Of a stretch of 64,000 nucleotides of DNA, positions 2,697 to 18,004 are shown piece after piece (the first letter of the stretch is position 1; each line of letters opens with the position of its first letter). The notes below the pieces were generated by a model. That model worked only from the letters and a program-made list of their open reading frames with translations. It had not been told where the DNA came from and made no database searches. The DNA lies in NCBI GenBank assembly GCA_965202585.1, contig OZ241834.1:11594001-11658000 (forward strand). Direction: 5' to 3'. Both the position numbers and the translations under genes were made by a program. The DNA comes from Thalia democratica (taxonomy: Eukaryota).

Positions 2697-4283
2697 TGTA
2701 TATAGCTAAATAAAAAAGTATTTACAAAAACAAAAATTATAGTTTTATCTATAACTTAAAGGGTGTAAGATGTTTTTATTAAAAATATATTTTTAGCATC
2801 AAGTTTAAAAACAACTTAGTTTTTGCTATACCCGAAGATAAAATTTTGCCTTTAACACCTACTTAAGAATAGCTTTGCTGAACGTATTTTATATCAAACC
2901 GTAATTAATTTTAAATATTAAAAAGTCATTATAAAACCAAAGTTTATGAGATTTCTTAATAAGACTAGACCAATATAACTCTAACTAAATTTAAATATGC
3001 TGTTTATTAGTTTCGCACAGGTATGGAACAACAAATTCACTTGAAAAGACTTTGATCAACAATCTGATTTAAGGAAATTTTATATTAGAATTAAAAAAAT
3101 ATTTCACATAATTGCAGAAGAAATACTAAGGAGATAACTACTTGTATAACTAATTACTAGTTAGAACAAAGAAGTTTCTAGGTTTTTTAGTAGGTTAGCA
3201 CAGTTTTTTCTGTTAATTATTAAAATGCATTTAATAGTAAGTTTAAATAAAAAAATTTAGAAGACTAAGTAAATGTCGATTAATGTGTTACAGGATTTGT
3301 AAAATATATGGTAAATAGATATAATACATAAAACTAATATTTATAATTTTGAAGTGACCGTTACTATTGACATTATTAGACTTTTTTTAATAACTAACTT
3401 AATCTGTAAACAGTTATCCATTAAGTAAGAAAACACTGCTTAAACTGTAATAAATTCTTTTAAATAAAATTTTAGTTATCGGTAGTTTAAAGATAATTAT
3501 ATTATACTTTATAGTATCCCTCAGTGAATTTTCGTTAGTTTTTCTTTAAAATGTGAACTTTTACTTCAATTACATTTAAGCATCAAATCTGTTTAGTCTT
3601 GAATGACCTAATTTAGAAAAGTCGAATGCAACTTAAAAAAAAGGTTTTAGCAATAAACTTAAGTATACCAAAAATAAATGATAACGAAACATAAAATAAC
3701 TTTAGTTAGACAAAATTTTTAGGAAAGTGTTGAAGTATCACTACATTAACGTCGTTAATGATTAGTTAAAATGACATGTTCAGTATCTAGTGAACTATAA
3801 AATCAAAAAATACAAAGTTAAATAATAGAATTTTTAGTATGTGTGAAAAGTGTTCCTTTAACACAAAAGGTCTTGACAAACATTTTTTTGGAGACAATAA
3901 TAACACTAATTCTATTTGAAAAAAGACAACGATGTGTTACCAAAATTTTTTTTTCAGGTCTGAAAAGTAAAAATATATGATAACGATAAATAACTCAATA
4001 AAAAGTGTAAAACATTTTTTATAAAAATATTTCTATAAATTTATAGAAATTAATACGCTAATTTAGCACTATTATTAACGTAAACAAAAATAAAAAACAT
4101 AAATAATCAAATTTATTTATACTTAAAAGTTGTTATAATACTATATTGTTTTATAAATGTTATATTGTATATAGTTTTAGATACTTATAGCAAAAACAGC
4201 TTATAGCAACAAAAATCTAAAATGGAATCTAACAAATAAAAATACGGTAAACATTAATACGCAAAAACGAAAACCAAAATTAC

Positions 4284-4630
4284 TTAAAGTTTTAAGATAT
4301 AATTTTCTAAAGTGCGGGCAGATGTAAAAAAAAAGTCTTGTGTTTTATTTAAACTGCATTTTTTGTTAGCTTGTGTAATTTCAATCTTTTCCAGGTTACA
4401 TGTTTTACAGATATTACTTATATTGTTTAATTCCCCAATCTTATGTATAACATTCCATTTAATTTCGTAGCATATGTCATTGTTTTTCAATTTCCAAATG
4501 TAGTTTCAAATCTCTGTTCTTTTGTTTCTTTCATTTTTTATATCACTAGTGTGCGCGTACCATCTCTTTTTATATATACCTCCCAAAGGTCCCAATTTTG
4601 GGTGAAATGTCGTTGTCTTTTGTAAGTAAA
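4284..4630 (-). mobile_element. Penelope-like retroelement remnant: GIY-YIG endonuclease C-terminal region
   Basis: Minus-strand translation KKRWYAHTSD...NYIWKLKNNDICYEIKWNVI...CKTCNLEKIEI...LNK fits the PLE endonuclease pattern KxRxxxH...YIWxLK...CxxCxxEK...LNK. It has one in-frame stop. Confidence 0.75.
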
Positions 4631-6318
4631 CTTATTATTATGAATAGCGTTTAACGTTAATATAAGAATTTCACAGTAAAAAACTGATTGAATCTGCTTT
4701 AGTATAACCTAATAAAAGTTTTATTCACATAGATTTTTTTTCAACAAACAACTAAGTGTATTTAAATCTTTGTAAATGACATCGAGAATTTTCAAATAGT
4801 AAATTTAACTTTCTAGTTTAAAAATGATGCATAATCATATTTTACTTAAGTAAGTATTTTCGAAAAGATAACTTTAGGTAACTTAATAAAAAAAAAAGAT
4901 AAAAGTAGGCTGTTTTTGGACTATTTAATTTATGTCGTATGATTTCACTATGAAAATACAACTTAAACATTAGTCTGAAATCTCCTAAACTGACAAGTAG
5001 TAGATAAAATCATTTTATAAATTTAATACTCATTAATTAAATATTTTTTGCAAAAAAAAAAAAAACACTAAAACATCTTTTAACATAGGTGAACTTTCAG
5101 ATTAAATAACGTTTGTATTAAATAATCTAAGCTTCTGCTTTTTTCTACTCCACATAGACTCAAAGAAACCATTCGAAATACGCCCCTGACTTTATACACA
5201 AAAACTTTAGCGAGTTTTCTTATTTTTGTAACTTCTTTTCGTAAAAGTTTTACTTAAATTTAAAAAAATATATTTAACTTTACTGTAGTAATTAGTAGTA
5301 AACTATACAGTTTATATTTCTTTAAATATATTCGTTTTTAAAAAATTAAATATATACTTTAAAAAATATTTATTTATATTATACCTTACTCGAAGTTTAA
5401 ATTGCAGCATATGGTAAAACATATACAAAATAAGCTTTATATCATACTGTTTTAAAGAATTTATCAGACAAGAAGGAAATTGCAGGCAGGATATTTACAA
5501 ATTGGAAAGATAGCACTCTTCCCTAAAATAGTATTACATTAAGTATTGTACATATTTTAACATTTTAGTTAAAAAAAACTGTTAGATGACATATACAATT
5601 ACAAAAAATATAAAAAAACTTTTAAAGATTTTCTTTTAATTAAAATTCTTATATACAGCTGTGCAAAATTTAAACTATCTGTCACAAAAATAGTTTACCT
5701 CTTTTACAAGAACTATAAAATACAAAAAAAAAATAGTGCTTAGATTAAGTTGCAAAATATAAAGTGCTACAAAAAAACAATTTACAAGGTTTTATTTAAG
5801 GTTGTTATAAGTAAAATATTTAATGTTCTGTTAACGTTAAAACTTACAAAGTGGTACTTATAGTTTGACACTGTTAAAAACTAATTAAATACATACAAAA
5901 TTTTTTAAACTTTAGCATTTACATTTTTACAAAATTCATTTACATACAGAATTATACATTTCATTTTGTTTTAGATTAACTTTGAAAAGTTTTCGAAGCC
6001 TCTTAACAAATAAAAGCTTTCATTTTTTATAAAAACTGTTCATTCAATGTACACTATAAAATTTTTTTTATAATATTACTGTAAGTAAACTATATTTTTA
6101 AAGTAAATAAGTGTTTCTATATGTAAAATGAAGCAAAAAAAAATCGTCAATTAATTACGAACTAACAAAACAGTACAAAAAACTTAATTTTAACTAGATA
6201 ATAGTAACAATGTTATTTAATTAATACATCAATCTATATAAATAGTTTAAAGTTTGTTTTCAAAAATTTAAAAATCATAAATGTAAAATACTAAGTAATT
6301 TAATATAAAAATCTAGAA

Positions 6319-9300
6319 CAGCGGTCGTAAAACTGCGGCCTGCGAGCCAACTGCGGCCATCAGAGGGTTATTCTGCGGCCAGCGATAATATTTTATTTTT
6401 AAATGGAATGCAGCCCGCTAGCATGTAAATGTGGCCCGCTGAGCAAAATGATGTTTTAAGTTTTTTTTTTTGGTAATTTGGTTTACTTTGAATATTGGTT
6501 ATAAGTCTCAGTATAACATTTTAAAGCATTTAACAGGTTTTACTGCTTAGGCTTAAAAATTGTGAAAACTACAGATTAGTACAGATTAGCATTTGACCTT
6601 TTTTTTTTTCTCTGTTTCATGAAAACTTTCTTCTTACAACCGCAAGTTAATATCTGAAAAAAAAGGTTAAAAAGTGCTTGGACCCGGTAAGTTAATTATA
6701 TAATACTTATATAGTAAACAAGTTAAATGCAAATGTATTCTATTGTGTACAAAAATAATGCACAATAAATAACTAAAATGTAATTTTTTTACGATTCAGG
6801 TATTTTGTAAAATATGTAAATTATACTTATTATTTTATATATTTTTTATCAACACAAAAGTAAATTATATACTTCAGTGCGCACAAAAACATTTAAAAAA
6901 CGTAATAGTAAGAAATAAGGTTTATTTTGTTTTGGTTTTGACACATTTTGATTTTTTAGAAGTTTTCTGTGCATCTTAAATTAATTCCTAAGCACACCAA
7001 AGTACGAAAATGCTTATTTTTGAACCAACTTTTTGTTAAATTCTAAAGTTAGGTAAAGTTTAGTTTATGTGCTATTAAATTCCTTTATATTATAAAATGT
7101 ATAAGTGTGTACAGACACGTTTGAACAATACTTTTGACATAAATTAAAGTAGTATTGTTCAGTTTATATTTCATTTTTCAAAAAATATTTTTAAGCAAAT
7201 TAAGTTTATTTCTATGCTTTGCATACTAATACATTACTAATACTAATGCTTTGCATACAAATGCTCTTTTTTGGAACTATCTATTTAATATATACTATAT
7301 TTTGAGATGATAAACTTATAAAGTCTATAATTTGTCAATCAAAATAGTTCAAACTTAAGCTTATAAGCAGCTTAACACTGCCACACACTCAGAATAATCT
7401 TGATAGTTTTAAGAATTTCAAATCTCAGGCAAATTTAGATTTTTTTTTTGTTAGTTTTTGGCTTAATTTTTTTTTATTCTAAAATATTAGGCAAATTTTT
7501 GGTCTCCCAGGCTGGCTTTTTTGCTTTAAAGAGTGGCAAACTTATGATGTACACTTTGTTAAATTTACAGTTTTGGATTTAATTTAAAGTTTTAAGTCTT
7601 GCAGATGCTATAATTTGATATATTATTTATATTAATTGTAATCCTATAATGTTCAAGTTTCATTTGCAATTGGAAAATTGCCAATACTTACTTAATTTAT
7701 TAAGCTTATTGTCTTCGTACACAATGCTTCCTTGTGTATTACTAAATAAAATTAGTTGATAAACAACATAAGTTCAAGATCTGGTTTTAAAACAAAATAA
7801 TATTACCATCATGTATTTAGCAATAATTGCAGTAGCAACATTGTTTGTGACAAAAATCTAAGATCAACAACCACTAAAATGTTTAATGCACTATTGCTTT
7901 TGAAATACCTATCGTTGTGCAATTTTTATTCAAATAGCAAAAATATATTTTTAGCAATTTTTTTTCGGTAGTTTGATTTAATTTGATTAATTTCGTTTTA
8001 AGTCGCTGTATAACAATAAAAAAATATAAAAGAGTTTACTGATTTGGCTTAAAAGTATGAAAAATATAAATTAGCATTCGACTACTATTTTTTCACAGTT
8101 TCATAATAACTTTCTTCTTACAACAGCAAGTTATTATCTGAAACAGAGAGTAAATAGTGCTCGGATTTAGTAAGTTATACATAATACTTATTTAATAAAT
8201 AAAATAAATGCAAATGTTTTCAATTACGTACTAGAGTAATGCACAGTAATTAACTAAAATTTCATTTCTTTACAAATTAAGTACTTAGTTTAATATTTAG
8301 TTTATACGTATGTTTCTCTTATAGATGTTTTATAACTACATGTTATACTTAAGTGTACATAAAAACACTAAAAATTACATAATAACAAAACTTAGGTTTA
8401 TTATATTTTGGTTTCGACACATTTTGATTTTTTAGAAGTTTTCTGTGCACTTTAAACTAGTTCTCATGTACACAAATGTACTCAGATGCTAATTTTTTGA
8501 ACCAATTTTTATTTAATACTTAGTTCGATTAAGTTAAGTTTAAAAATATTGTTTTACTATTATTATTTCTATAAGTATTATCTAAGTGTGTACAGACACA
8601 TTTAAATAATAATATAAAAAGCATAAACTTAAATAGTTTTTGTTAGGTATATATTTTCAGTTTTCAAAGAATATTTTTTGGCAGATTTTTGTTTCACTTG
8701 CAATTTTTTCGCGTTCTTAAATAAATTATAGTACTCATAATTAACAAAAAAAATCAATCAAGCTATTGTACGTATTAAACTTTGTTAAAAAATGTGCGCT
8801 ACACTTTAACAAAATACTTTTTTGTGAAGGTTTTATAGGATCTGAATTTATTTTTTGATAATTGAAGGTCAGAAAATCATGTGGAAAATTCGTCTGATAT
8901 GTTTTTAAATGCATACAAAAATTAAATACCTGTTTTTTGTTTGATGTTTCAAAGGTTTTGTAATTATTTTTAAAATCTGAAACCCCTACAGTCTTAAATT
9001 TGTTTCAAAAGTCATAATATTGTACTACATCTCATAATTTTTTTTTTTCCATTAATACAAAGTTAAATTTTTAAGTTGCGATGTAAGAAATACCAGAAAT
9101 GCTAATAATAGTATGAGGTTTTTATCTTTATAAGCAGTGTTATTTATATTTTACTTTTAAGAAAAGATACAATTTCATTTCTTAACTAATAGACTCGTTA
9201 TAACATCAAACAAATACTTAACAAAAGAACAAGCCAAAAGTAAACTAGGTCAACGTATTGACTTTTTGTTTTTCTACTATTTTTTGAAACTGTCGGTGAT

Positions 9301-12526: not shown

Positions 12527-12754
12527 ATCTAGATAGGAAAATAACTGTTTTTTAGCCGGTTTACTAAAACAGATGATACATTTTTTCATAGGTTTCTTTA
12601 ACTTAAATTTTGCTGCGCTTTGTAGCATTAACCTTCGTTTTTTGTTTTACTACTTTTTTAAAACATAAGTTTTCGACCCTAGTTAAATACTTTAAAAACA
12701 AATTGGATTTTTGTATTGAAAATAAAAAAATAAAAGTGTTTTATGTAAACATTT

Positions 12755-12995
12755 TTGTCATAAAAAAATTGAAGAAATACTGGTGTATAATTAAAAGAAA
12801 TAATGTAATGTTTTAAATTAAGAAAAAAACCTTCCAGAGGTAAATAAGATTTAAGCTAATGTAATAGTTTTTGTTGTCACATTTGTTGTCATTAAAACAA
12901 ATTGAAGAAATACTGGTGTATAATTTAAAAAAATAATGTAATGCTTTAAATTAAGAAAAAAAAACCTTCTAGAAGTAAATAAGATTTAAGCTAAT
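12755..12995. repeat. Two-copy tandem duplication, period about 133 bp
   Basis: ATTGAAGAAATACTGGTGTATAAT...GTAAATAAGATTTAAGCTAAT occurs at about 12768 and 12901. Confidence 0.85.
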
Positions 12996-14075
12996 TATTT
13001 AATTATTTAATTAAAAATCCTCTGAAATCAGACGAAATTTGCAAAATTTTCCTCGAAGTTTACAAAATTACTAAATCTATTAAAAATTAGTATAGTATCA
13101 TTCATAAAACTGCAAAGTTTTTCTTTTAACATATTGAATAACTACCCTACTTGAACAAGCAGTTTTTGCTTGTTTTTTAGTACTAATGACCTGTGGCAAG
13201 GACACTTCCATAGTGAAAATGTGATATACACACAAACGTTTATTTTGCAGAAATTTAGAATCAGGAGGCTGAAGTTTCGCAGATATTTAAAATCAGATAT
13301 TCGCATTTTTGAACAGATATTCGCTATAAACAAGCTTTCGTAAAAAATTAATGTAGCTTACAGTTCTTATTCAATTTAGACGAAAAACATCTTAAACGAT
13401 TCGTCTTGCTTTGTAGTTATTAAATTTTTGGTTTAGACCGATTAAAATCATCAAAAAAAAAATATTTTGTGACAAAGTTCAACTAATATTTTTTTTGTTT
13501 ATTCTATATAAAAAAACTAAGTTTCGTAAAAAATTAATGGAGCTTACAATTCTTATCAAACTTAGACAAATAACATCTTAAACGATTCGTCTTACTTTGT
13601 AGTTTTTAAATTTTTTGTTTAGATTGAAAAAAATTCATAATTTTTTTTTTTTTGACCTCAAAGTTCAACTAATAGCTTTCTTTTTTATTCTATGTAAATC
13701 AATTAAAATAAGTTACGACCTAAAAACCAATCAATTTTTCCGTCGGTTTTCTTAACAAAAGTAAACACTCTTTCAATTTGACTTTTCAATTCTAGATTAT
13801 TTCAAAAAAATAATTCAAGCCATTTGTCTCGTTTAAAAATATCAAATACTTTTTCAGATTAAAGATAAACACAAAAACTTGTACCTATTTTTAATCAAAC
13901 TTTTTCTACCTCTTTTAAAAGTTGTGTTATACGCTTATACTTCTGCTATTTTAAACAATATATTTTAATTCATACGTCATAATTAACTGCTACTTATTGT
14001 GCAGTTCTCATAACTTAAAGTTTAACTAATTCAAAAATAAAAATACAATTTATTGCAAACTTGTTAGTCTTCAAT

Positions 14076-15003
14076 ATGCCTAAATCAAAAAGAAACAATC
14101 CTTCATTTACTTTCTATTTTAATGACTTGACTAAGCTAGTTAAAATAATGTTAAGTTTAAAGTTTAAACAAAGATATTTTAAAGATTGCTCACAAACATC
14201 TAAAGAAGCTATTAAAATATATATGAATAAAAACTATGTTCCAAGAAGGGAAATTGAAATGATCATGAGAGTTTGGAGGTGTAATACTGGAGGAGTTAAA
14301 GATATGTATGAGAAAATTCTAAATGGTTCGTTTGAAATCAAGTTAATTTTTCCAAGTATTACTAAAACAGTTTCCCGCATGCTTCCTTCAATAATGCATG
14401 TTTTTCAGACTCAAAACTATTTAGCACAAGAGACTGCAAAAGCTCTTAAAGTAAGTTGATTTAAATTTTAAGAATATTTTCCTCTGCACAACTAGTTTAA
14501 ATTTGATACTCACCACTCGTTTTTCAGATTCAAAACTACTCAGCACAAGAAACTTTAAAAGCTTTTGAAGTTAGTTTTTTAACTTTGTAAATATCGTTTA
14601 CAATATTATTAAAATACAGTTTTTTTTTCAGACTCAGAACTACTTATCAAAGGAAATTTTGAAAGCGCTTGAAGTTAATTAACTTTAGTTTAAATACTTA
14701 CAACTCTATAAATATATTGAATAACTTTTAAAAACTAGTATTTTTCAGACTCAGAAACTAACAAACCAAGAGCAAAGCTTAAAAGTAAGTTAGTTGTAAA
14801 TTATTCAATACTTGGTTGTTTATACATGTTATTTAAAAAAAAATTTCATACTAAGTGCCAACAATACCTAATGGAAACATAAAGTTTAGCAATACAGAGA
14901 AGAAATCGGATAAAAAAGAGTAGAAATTGGAAGTTCTATGTTAGCAGCTGAAGGTTTGTAACAATTGAAAAAGTATTTTAGCACAGAAACCAAACCAAAA
15001 TAA
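14076..15003 (+). CDS. Cargo gene of unknown function inside the foldback element, multi-exon, with a probably decayed last exon
   Basis: ORF MPKSKRNNPSF... starts at 14076. It is followed by AG/GT-bounded phase-0 mini-exons at 14409-14450, 14528-14569, 14632-14673 and 14749-14784, then a terminal segment (about 14856-15003) with stops and a homopolymer frameshift. No transposase motif is recognisable. Confidence 0.55.
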
Positions 15004-16174
15004 TGATGATTAATATTATGCAATTTCATTAACAGATAATAAAATGACGAACTGTTTAAGATGTTTTTTATTTGAAATGGATAAGAATAGTCAGCTAAAA
15101 GAAACTTAGTTGTTTAACAAAAGAAAATAACAATATTTTAGAATTATAAAAAATGTTTATATTTAATCAAACCAAAAATTTACTAGCTACAAAGCAAGAC
15201 GAATCGTTTAAGATGTTTTTTGTCTAAGTTTAATAAGAATTGTGAGCTCCATTAATTTTTTACGAAACTTAGTTGTTTTGTAAAGAATAAACAAGCAAAA
15301 TATTAGTTGAACTTTGCGGTCAAAAAATACATTTTTCTTATGACTTTATTCAATCTAAACCAAAAATTTAATATCTAAAAAGCAAGACGAATCGTTTAAG
15401 ATGCTTTTTGTCTAAATTGAATAAAAACTGTAAGCTCCATAATTTTTTTACGAAACTTAGTTGTTTATATAGAATAAACAAGAAAAATATTAATTGAACT
15501 TTGAGGTCACAAAATATAGTTTTTTTTTGATGAATTTTTCAATCTAAACCAAAAATGTAATATCTACAAAGTAAGACGAATCGTTTAAGATGTTTTTTGT
15601 CTAAGTTTGATAAGAATTGTAAGCTCCATTAACTTTTTACGAAACTTTGTTGCTTTGTATAGAATAAACAAGCAATAAATTAATTGAACTTTGAGGTCCA
15701 AAAAATATTTTTTTAAATGACTTTATTCAATCTAAACCAAAAATGTAATATCCACAAAGCAAGACGAATCGTTTAAGATGTTTTTGTCTAAGTTTAATAA
15801 GAATTGTAATCTCCATAAATGTTTTACGAAACTTAAATGTTTTGTATATAATAAACAAAAAAAATATTAGTTGAACTTTGAGGTCACAAAATATTTTTTT
15901 AATGATTTTAATCGGTCTAAACCAAAAATGTAATATTTACAAAGTAAGACGAATCGTTTAAGATGTTTTTTGTCAAAGTTTGATAAGAATTGTAAGCTCC
16001 ATTAATTTTTACGAAACTTGGTTGTTTTATATAGAATAAACAATAAAAAAAATTAGTTAAACTTTGAGGTCAAAAAAAAAATTTTTTTGATGAATTTTTC
16101 AATGTAAACCAAAAATGTAATAATTATAAAGCAAGACGAATCGTTTAAGATGTTTTTTGTCTAAGTTTAGAAAG

Positions 16175-16450
16175 AATTTTAAGTTCTTCTTCTTGTTTTG
16201 GTAGGAATTTTGATTTAAATCCAAAAGTTTCTATTTTTTCCTCATTTTCATACATACTTTCATTTTCTTCTTTGTTTGTACAGTAGAAAACTTTCAATCT
16301 AATTCGCCTGCAGAAGTTTCTTATCTTGTCAATTAGCTTAAGCTTGTATTCGTTTTGGCTGCATATAGGAATATTTTTTGTTGAATAATGGAAGTTGATT
16401 TTTTCAAAGTGTGCCATTATTAATAGTAAAATGTGTAGTTGGCTCAACAG
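16175..16450 (-). mobile_element. Penelope-like retroelement 5' ORF fragment interrupting the right TIR array
   Basis: INFHYSTKNIPICSQNEYKLKLIDKIRNFCRRIRLKVFY...ETFGFKS resembles the YSxKNIP...YxxxLIxK...RMRWKAxF...FGFKS N-terminus of PLE proteins (family recalled from memory, not searched). It breaks the 187-bp periodicity between 16135 and 16555. Confidence 0.65.
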
Positions 16451-18004
16451 AGATTTTCTGGGGCCTTGCTGTACTAGTAAATTTGACTATTACTATTTAA
16501 GATCCAAAAACCAAAAATTCCATCTAAACCAAAAATTTAATAACAACAAAGCAAGACGAATCGTTTAAGATGTTTTTCGTCTAAATTGAATAAGAACTGT
16601 AAGCTACATTATTTTTTTACTAAAGCTTGTTTATAGCGAATATCTGTTCAAAAATGCGAATATCTGATTTTGAATATCTGCGAAACTTCAGCCTCCCTTT
16701 AGAATCAATGTGTTTTTTGTTTGAGTAAATAACTAAGTTCTTTATAATTAAGCACTAAGTCTAGTATTTTTTGTAACAATTTTATGTGTATACTTTACCT
16801 CTTTATAATTTTTCTAAGTTGTTTTAATTTAAGAAATAAGTCATAAGAGAGGTATATGCCATGGTTAAGTTTACTTGTTTGTAATTTTTTGTAGAATAAC
16901 TGAAGTTTTTAAAATGAATAAGAGTAGATTTATTTGTTACACATTTTATACTAAATGATAAGAGGAAATATAAGATTGAAAGTTTTATATAGTTTCAAGT
17001 GTTTGATTAAGTATTTTAGAATAAGTTTAACTTTAGATTTTGATTTAGAAAAGTCAGGAAATTTAAGAAAATGTCAGGATTTTTTTTCAGCTTGATCTGT
17101 GGCAACCCTGTTTTACATACAGGAGTTGCACCACACTATGTCTTGTTTGAAGCTTTTTAAAAACTCAGATTAACACTTGTTAATTTGGAAACCTCAGCCA
17201 ATTTTTTTTTTCATAAACTCAAGCTAGCTTTATATTTTTTGAAATACTTAGCTACTTTTTTGTTGCATTTTTAATGATTTTGAGTTGATTCAAATATAAC
17301 CTTACTTTTAGTAAACTCTTGCTCTATTAATCTAATTCTCTTTAGTTTACAACAGGGATTCCAACAGAGTTTCCAGGGCAATTTTAAAATTTTGAGATTT
17401 ACACAAGACATTCTTGAGTGGCAGATGAAGAGCAAAATAAAAGAGCTCTTAGGTGTTTTAAATGGTAGTTTTTTTAGTAGTGTTGTTGGAGGGGCAATAG
17501 CTTTTTAATTTCTTTAGATGGAGCCATTTGAAAAAAAAGTTAGGAAGTTCTGGTTTACAACATTATTTATAATTTGTAGTCAAAAAGTTTTTGCTTTGCA
17601 TCAAATAATTCTTTATTTTTTAGTTATTAAATTAGTTTTAGTCCAACAGTAATGGTGCTACAAAATGATATAGATAGTAATTGATATTTGTAAGCATGTT
17701 TAGAACTATATAGTACATTAGTAATTTTTTTTATAACAAAATTTTTGGTAGTAAGGATGTACATGTCAAAAACTTATATACGACATTGTACTTGTTCCTT
17801 GAATAATTTTTTTATAGTACAAATGTTTATGATTGCTTTAAATAAGTTTTGTTTCTTAGGTCCTTTAGCGGAAAATTGTTTTAGAATTTTACATAAACAA
17901 TTTTTTAATTTAACATTTGAATTACATACAAAAAGACTTAAAATTTTTAAATTTAAAAAACCTTTTGTTTTTGATTTAAGTCAAAGACCATTAGATTAAG
18001 AATA

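Follow-up and report, generated by a model that had tools for sequence, protein, structure and literature searches.

A Foldback-type element in Thalia democratica that is probably an internally deleted member of a Mutator-like transposon family

We analyzed a mobile element of 3.4 kb in a stretch of 64,000 nucleotides from Thalia democratica (GenBank assembly GCA_965202585.1, contig OZ241834.1, positions 11,594,001 to 11,658,000, forward strand), which we call the window. The element occupies window positions 13263-16697. It is very probably a non-autonomous, internally deleted copy of a Foldback-type family of the Mutator superfamily, with a transposase of the NOF-like lineage. An earlier note, based on the letters of the window alone, had described this unit as a Foldback transposon whose arms enclose a non-transposase cargo gene. 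Comparison with long copies of the same family suggests that this "cargo" is the remnant 5' portion of a transposase gene region that belongs to the family itself.

Probable deletion origin of the copy and its open frame

The family is represented at many loci. A genome search with the terminal 80 nt, which the earlier note had proposed, gave 213 first-look candidates in the 802-Mb genome, and the 40 candidates that were scored are 92-100% identical. The interior (window 13700-15040) is also multi-copy, and several loci have its two halves separated by 1.4-2.1 kb. One member, L061, is complete: it is 9.07 kb long, has the same ends and is flanked by a perfect target-site duplication (TSD) of 9 bp. 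Counted from the start of the element, positions 1-1123 match L061 267-2143 (with positions 73-1123 aligning to L061 1084-2143 at 87%), positions 1127-1602 match L061 3566-4023, and the rest matches from L061 8657 on. The window copy is therefore collinear with L061 except for two gaps, L061 2143-3566 (deletion 1) and 4023-8672 (deletion 2), and thus corresponds to a long copy minus two internal segments. The junction of deletion 1, at window 14386/14390, holds 3 nt of filler and keeps the reading frame. The stretch at the junction of deletion 2 aligns on both sides, with L061 4006-4023 and with L061 8657-8679, and this deletion takes out all zinc-finger, DDE and Ulp1 exons. When the interior was searched against the genome, the junctions of the window copy were found at no other locus. 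The deletion form has thus been seen once, which does not agree with the earlier proposal of a gene spread by a non-autonomous element.

The nature of the interior is most readily seen in the long copies. Their parts follow one another on one strand: exon 1, a gap of 1.4-2.1 kb, a series of micro-exons, a zinc-finger exon, the DDE exons and Ulp1-like exons. Exon 1 and the micro-exons have the same place, order and strand in the genome copies L061, L062 and L063, and in L067, a 6036-bp Tara Oceans marine-metagenome contig (ENA ERZ907909, PRJEB4352) that is 90% identical to L061 1201-7283; Ulp1-like exons are reached in L061 and L063. L067 derives from a sample of marine plankton, so that either this organism or a near relative with a less decayed copy is marine. 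The element in the window retains no transposase core and has no match to the transposase-related proteins described below. In this respect the earlier observation of an intron-containing interior with no DDE motif was correct, but the interior does not appear to be a gene separate from the transposase. Nor does it look like the accessory protein that had been considered, since exon 1 is followed by zinc-finger and DDE exons in the long copies.

The micro-exon units were found by a pattern scan and were also seen as a family of direct repeats. In L061 there are seven such units, of 42, 42, 42, 40 (36 in the window), 42, 42 and 45 nt, with tttcag and gtaagt-like sites on either side and no in-frame stop, and the window copy holds the first four. 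Their peptides have diverged, yet they share one common pattern. That unit length and open frame are kept despite this divergence argues, at the level of sequence, for real exons. Their splicing to exon 1, and to the exons of the transposase, is inferred.

Among the genome copies that were read, the 127-codon frame is fully open only in the window, and the others have 1-3 stops; the exon-1 frame is also open in L067 and in metagenome relatives. The exon-1 peptide has four relatives among 5.8 billion protein clusters, all of them short, and all four lie on marine metagenome contigs that are copies of the same element. More diverged subfamily copies (72-81% identity) hold exon 1 as well. A Pfam scan of exon 1 found no family and no recognisable transposase domain. 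Exon 1 is better conserved with respect to L061 than its surroundings are (93.8% vs 87%). The ratio of nonsynonymous to synonymous substitution (dN/dS, Nei-Gojobori) among copies, another calculation that had been proposed, is about 1 between close copies (0.66-1.6) and 0.45-0.85 between subfamilies, values that come from small counts. They are as expected of a transposon gene that is constrained in an active lineage and decays after insertion. The available RNA data consist of a few diverged contigs over 13673-14296 from a marine metatranscriptome and three further runs of unknown kind; among the RNA matches listed there is no splice joint, which is uninformative either way.

It is important to consider whether the frame made by deletion 1 might nevertheless be put to use, i.e., expressed as an accessory or regulatory protein such as a truncated N-terminal transposase that damps transposition in the manner of the KP repressor. 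We regard this as unlikely, and give the same low weight to a broader version in which the micro-exon array is a real but so far undescribed module at the N-terminus of NOF-like transposases, one that expands and contracts through duplication of its units. The uniquely open frame, the in-frame junction, the elevated conservation of exon 1 and the dN/dS between subfamilies are all compatible with such a regulator. However, the deletion form is single-copy, dN/dS against close copies is near 1, and the zinc finger has been lost, so that no DNA-binding part is kept. No RNA support for expression of the frame in the window copy was found, and a frame of 127 codons is unsurprising in 73%-AT DNA with few mutations since the deletion.

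Two observations concern the long copies themselves. L063 (C4:57162500-57172499) and L062 (C4:57193000-57202999) are mirror images about 30 kb apart, and their flanks, AAAAAGAAGCAA and TTGCTTCTTTTT, are mirrored too; they therefore reflect a large inverted duplication and not two independent insertions. Further long copies, listed as 78-79% diverged, are located at C5:48370546 and C6:54954842.

Transposase of the family and superfamily placement

The transposase gene was searched exon by exon, with no joined spliced model. A 59-aa exon piece, searched with HMMER against 1.84 billion representatives, gave seven matches, among them P0006, an unnamed protein of 892 aa from Mytilus coruscus. One exon after another, and in the same order, L061 4.6-6.9 kb and the corresponding regions of L062 and L063 align with P0006 residues 315-830, and the exons of L067 likewise align in order with the P0006 group. 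The element's exons contain the motifs YIDATG, EMDFSW, HLCAAH and YAEIW. In an alignment of proteins P0006-P0018 (alignment A1), the conserved residues are D499 (LDATG), D573 (xDFSW), C620/H623 (CxxH) and E797 (VENWF), numbered as in P0006. Upstream of these there is a C...Cx4C...H pattern on a predicted beta-sheet of four to five strands (P0006 residues 283-372). A word-indexed search with A1 added one relative, with low-complexity words dominating.

Relatives of P0006 occur in Mytilus, in loaches and other fishes, in metagenomes and elsewhere, and they carry C-terminal C48 (Ulp1), OTU, UCH or PHD domains. P0014, P0015 and P0016 have the C48 family PF02902, and the alignment of the final L063 exons with P0016 falls within its C48 domain. 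For the core, Pfam gave no family in 20 single exon pieces or in the transposase relatives. A transposase group that lacks a Pfam core model and has interchangeable C48, OTU and UCH ends may be of help to transposon annotators.

Uninterrupted open frames related to P0006 were also noted. These intact frames of 763-1324 aa, which look intron-free, are located at C2:55582151-55583953, C4:4935937-4937649, C1:53640121-53641638, C5:37442563-37444080 and C8:20944631-20946043. They may represent active elements of this transposase group, or domesticated genes derived from it.

To place the family, we relied on predicted structure and on the TSD. P0006 was modelled with AlphaFold on the basis of A1, with a confident prediction for residues 253-840. 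The best Foldseek match of this model in the PDB is ISCth4, an IS256-family transposase (E 1.9e-5), followed by RAG1, Hermes and the P element. IS256 is a bacterial relative of Mutator transposases. In VIA-align, ISCth4 scores Z 12.3 (239 residues aligned, root-mean-square deviation (rmsd) 5.5), the P element Z 10.6 (236 aligned, rmsd 4.1) and Hermes Z 10.5. When residues 440-840 were compared with the ESM Atlas by features, the nearest clusters were Mutator-like elements (MULEs), at 0.93 and 0.91. By structure, the Atlas gave a cluster automatically named '120.7 kDa protein in NOF-FB transposable element' (TM 0.69 over 303 residues), in which C48 and PHD are common, and the structural list also contains many PF10551 clusters. 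The 9-bp TSD lies within the 8-11 bp, typically 9, of MULEs. Taken together, the structural matches, the Atlas clusters and the TSD place the family most likely in Mutator, in a NOF-like branch that includes the original Drosophila Foldback. The earlier comparison with FB and FB-NOF elements was apt for the arms and, judging from the modelled structure, appears to be so for the transposase as well. Most Foldback elements have been assigned to Mutator, with TSDs of 8-10 bp and tandem repeats in their terminal inverted repeats (TIRs; PMC4079207, PMC3169594), and hydra Mutator transposons with Ulp1 or OTU domains have been described (PMC2836005, PMC6446971).

Several points weigh against the classification and the deletion history proposed above. 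Neither P0006 nor any other member of A1 has a match to PF10551 at E <= 0.1, and a profile compared with PDB sequences gave no link to any solved transposase. The structural margin of ISCth4 over the P element and Hermes is small. The D-D-E residues are spaced 74/224, similar to the spacing in the P element. All three long genome copies that were read (L061, L062 and L063) are decayed: in-frame stops are present, and in L062 and L063 glycine replaces the second aspartate. In L067, exon 1 and all listed downstream exons are open and the catalytic motifs intact, but this contig is partial and comes from a metagenome. Because the long genome copies read are decayed, a working partner with these ends is not demonstrated in the genome; of the autonomous partner that the earlier note had suggested looking for, we thus found the long, transposase-bearing form in decayed genome copies and in L067. 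Finally, a single transcript that covers exon 1, the micro-exons and the exons of the transposase is presumed from their arrangement.

Some of these points might suggest that the family is a Galileo-like member of the P superfamily and not of Mutator. The P-element transposase is among the top structural matches, with the lowest rmsd of those given and a Foldseek TM of 0.34, and the catalytic spacing is close to that of P. However, ISCth4 scores above the P element, and all clear cases have a TSD of 9 bp, as against 7-8 bp for P and Galileo. The N-terminal domain is the C...Cx4C...H beta-sheet described above and not a THAP finger, with no THAP match in Pfam scans of the relatives. The named nearest Atlas clusters are all MULE, ZSWIM or NOF, and none is P. 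Galileo does offer a precedent for Foldback-like arms on a P-type transposase (PMC3573991, PMC3688188), but a P affiliation is very unlikely on this evidence, and a placement in Mutator continues to be the best available.

Arms, insertion site and proposed history

Features of the window copy are collected in Table 1.

Table 1. Coordinates of the element and its parts in the window
Feature	Position	Strand	Basis or remarks
Left TSD copy, TTTAGAATC	13254-13262		read directly; two paralogous empty sites
Left terminal domain, 65 nt	13263-13327	+	starts A-GGAGG-CTGAAGT; conserved across >30 family ends
Left arm array, 2.0 copies of 186-nt unit	13328-13698	+	Tandem Repeats Finder (TRF), 81% matches; direct repeats, inverted pairs with right arm
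5' internal unique region upstream of first exon	13699-14075	+	collinear with long copies; multi-copy in genome
Open frame, 127 codons and stop	14076-14459	+	list of open reading frames; exon 1 joined in frame by deletion 1 to an intron end and the first micro-exon
Four micro-exon-like units	14409-14450, 14528-14569, 14632-14673, 14749-14784	+	42/42/42/36 nt, phase 0, tttcag...gtaagt-like flanks
Deletion 2 junction	14848-14865		imperfect microhomology of about 18 nt
3' subterminal unique region	14866-15045	+	present in most members of the family; more than 15 loci match at 80-94%; L064 at 93%
Right arm array: degenerate inner unit (from about 15046) and 5.5 copies of 187-nt unit	15046-16183	-	inverted relative to left arm
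Foreign insert, 319 bp: 5' end (leader and first 78 codons) of another young, high-copy transposon	16184-16502	-	genomic copies
Right terminal unit and terminal domain	16517-16697	-	GGAGG end type like left end; private variants shared with left end
Right TSD copy, TTTAGAATC	16698-16706		read directly; two paralogous empty sites

The boundaries of the element were established from its flanks, both of which are part of one high-copy repeat (first-look candidates in the genome number at least 1469 for the left flank and at least 2140 for the right). Two uninterrupted copies of this repeat act as paralogous empty sites. In the copy on C8, the left-flank match (53984163-53984350) and the right-flank match (53984342-53984539) overlap by exactly 9 bp, as do the flank matches in the copy on C101 (38090-38277 and 37893-38098). 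These overlaps fix both the boundaries and the length of the TSD. The earlier note had reported a perfect duplication of 9-10 bp; the duplication is indeed perfect, and marks a mobile unit, but its seeming tenth base is the element's own first base (A), which matches the flank by chance. With the 13-nt model of the ends described below, perfect 9-bp TSDs were also found around L061, L020, L029 and L065, and 9-bp TSDs with one or two mismatches around L005, L010, L016, L018, L030 and L056. The TSD is thus 9 bp in every clear family case, i.e., in 10 members besides the window copy.

Copies of the host repeat around the element (window 13060-13262 and 16698-16900) are 84-92% identical. Just upstream of the element, at window 12749-12995, there is a separate 133-bp tandem repeat (1.9 copies, 91% matches).

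The arms have the architecture that defines Foldback elements, namely long inverted arms that consist largely of tandem subrepeats and vary in length. The TIRs proper (13264-13437 and 16523-16696) are 174 nt long and 98% complementary, and both arms are built of tandem units of 186/187 nt, two on the left and about seven on the right. TRF delimits the regular part of the right array at 15160-16183 (period 187, 5.5 copies, 85% matches), and one further unit of the 187-nt type adjoins the right terminus at 16517-16631. The earlier description of a Foldback transposon with asymmetric, satellite-built TIRs is therefore borne out by the TIRs, the arrays and the TSD, and its count of about 2 units on the left and 7-8 on the right agrees with ours, if the degenerate and terminal units on the right are included. 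Between copies the numbers of units differ widely: L061 has 6 in one arm and 3 in the other, and L065 about 9 in each.

Each terminal domain contains three CAGATATTYR motifs, those on the left at 13280, 13294 and 13314. All six matches to this motif in the window fall within the two terminal domains, where 0.73 matches in the window would be expected by chance, and we consider the motifs candidate transposase-binding sites.

An alignment of 36 family ends showed that the ends fit a 13-nt model of two types, with G/A-GGAGG-CTGAAGT at the end nearest the gene start and A-GTAAG-CTGAAGT at the other end. Most members have one end of each type, whereas the window copy has the GGAGG type at both. 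In the same alignment, the outer 175 nt of its two ends share at least four variants that are absent from other copies. Given the two GGAGG ends and these shared private variants, the right end has probably been copied from, or converted by, the left end.

The only foreign DNA within the element is the 319-bp insert in the right arm, which is absent from the other family members that were read. In the genome, its source family is represented by at least 30 copies that are 97-100% identical; most full-length matches stop at one common position, and open frames of 749-750 aa occur at more than 10 loci. The source is a young, probably active transposon family. The N-terminus of its protein has a weak match to DUF2661 (21.7 bits, below the cut-off of 23). 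Beyond the insert the 187-nt array is out of phase; because the array does not resume in phase after 16184-16502, this was not a simple insertion.

Capture of a host gene fragment in the manner of a Pack-MULE, which was also implied by the earlier idea of a captured host gene, is hardly credible: capture of gene fragments is a known property of Mutator-type elements (PMC8277862, PMC6431247) and the exon-1 peptide lacks a recognisable transposase domain, but the interior is collinear with long copies of the family itself, exon 1 and the micro-exons lie at the same place in all long transposase-bearing copies, the diverged subfamily copies hold exon 1 too, none of the 5.8 billion clusters gives a match outside the element family, and the sole foreign piece is the transposon fragment in the right arm.

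Under the preferred reading, i.e., an internally deleted Foldback-type copy, the history of the element might have been as follows. Full-length relatives of about 9 kb would encode exon 1, seven 14-codon micro-exons, a beta-sheet zinc finger, a DDE core and a C-terminal Ulp1/C48 domain. Two internal segments would have been lost from such a copy, the larger at a short microhomology; such losses commonly arise when gap repair is interrupted after excision, or by slippage, and these two would be of that kind. A transposase supplied by a full-length relative would bind the 65-nt terminal domain through its three CAGATATTCG-type motifs, and perhaps the 187-nt subrepeats, and would excise and paste the element with a 9-bp staggered cut; one such insertion would have taken place here, inside another repeat. 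Arm length presumably shifts by unequal exchange or slippage among the 187-nt units, and the wide differences in arm length between copies point to unequal exchange. The right arm would later have been reworked, by gain of the transposon fragment and by homogenisation of its outer 175 nt with the left end.

The analysis removes a candidate cargo gene and shows the origin of the structure. It also provides a well-resolved Foldback family in a non-insect animal, with ends of both types, a TSD whose length of 9 bp is established by empty sites and a deletion series, and its long copies tie Foldback arms to a Mutator-type transposase that is NOF-like and bears Ulp1.

Comparison with known systems

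One of the closest known systems is FB-NOF of Drosophila melanogaster (classified in RepeatMasker as DNA/MULE-NOF). It shares with the present family inverted arms of tandem subrepeats whose number varies by arm and by copy, a 9-bp TSD, and a population in which most copies are non-coding and a few long ones have a large gene. In the structural comparison with the Atlas, the transposase core has as a neighbour the cluster that bears the name of the 120.7-kDa protein of NOF-FB and has C48 and PHD domains. Unlike FB-NOF, the present family has a subrepeat of 186-187 nt with an unrelated sequence, and its gene is split by many short introns and includes the micro-exon array.

Tetris of Drosophila virilis has TIRs in which tandem repeats of about 220 bp, in variable number, are combined with an outer and an inner domain, and its TSDs of 8-10 bp are the basis on which it was assigned to Mutator (PMC4079207). 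No transposase-bearing copy of Tetris is known (PMC4079207), whereas long copies with a transposase gene exist here.

Tm1 of root-knot nematodes is similar in its 9-bp TSDs, its composite TIRs with tandem repeats, and its many deleted and rare transposase-bearing members (PMC3169594). The short motifs at its extreme ends are non-identical (PMC3169594), as are those of the present family, in which GGGAGG marks the gene-5' end and AGTAAG the gene-3' end. It differs in that its subrepeats are about 14 bp and its transposase, of 496 aa, is of the Phantom type, with a recognisable MULE domain and no Ulp1 (PMC3169594).

A combination of a Mutator-type transposase with a C-terminal cysteine protease that removes SUMO or ubiquitin is also a feature of the MuDR elements of Hydra magnipapillata in Repbase with Ulp1 or OTU (PMC2836005; MuDR-6_HM, PMC6446971) and of plant KI-MULEs. 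The likeness to the hydra elements is drawn at the level of domains, and on the side of the present family it lies in relatives that carry C48, OTU, UCH and PHD domains.

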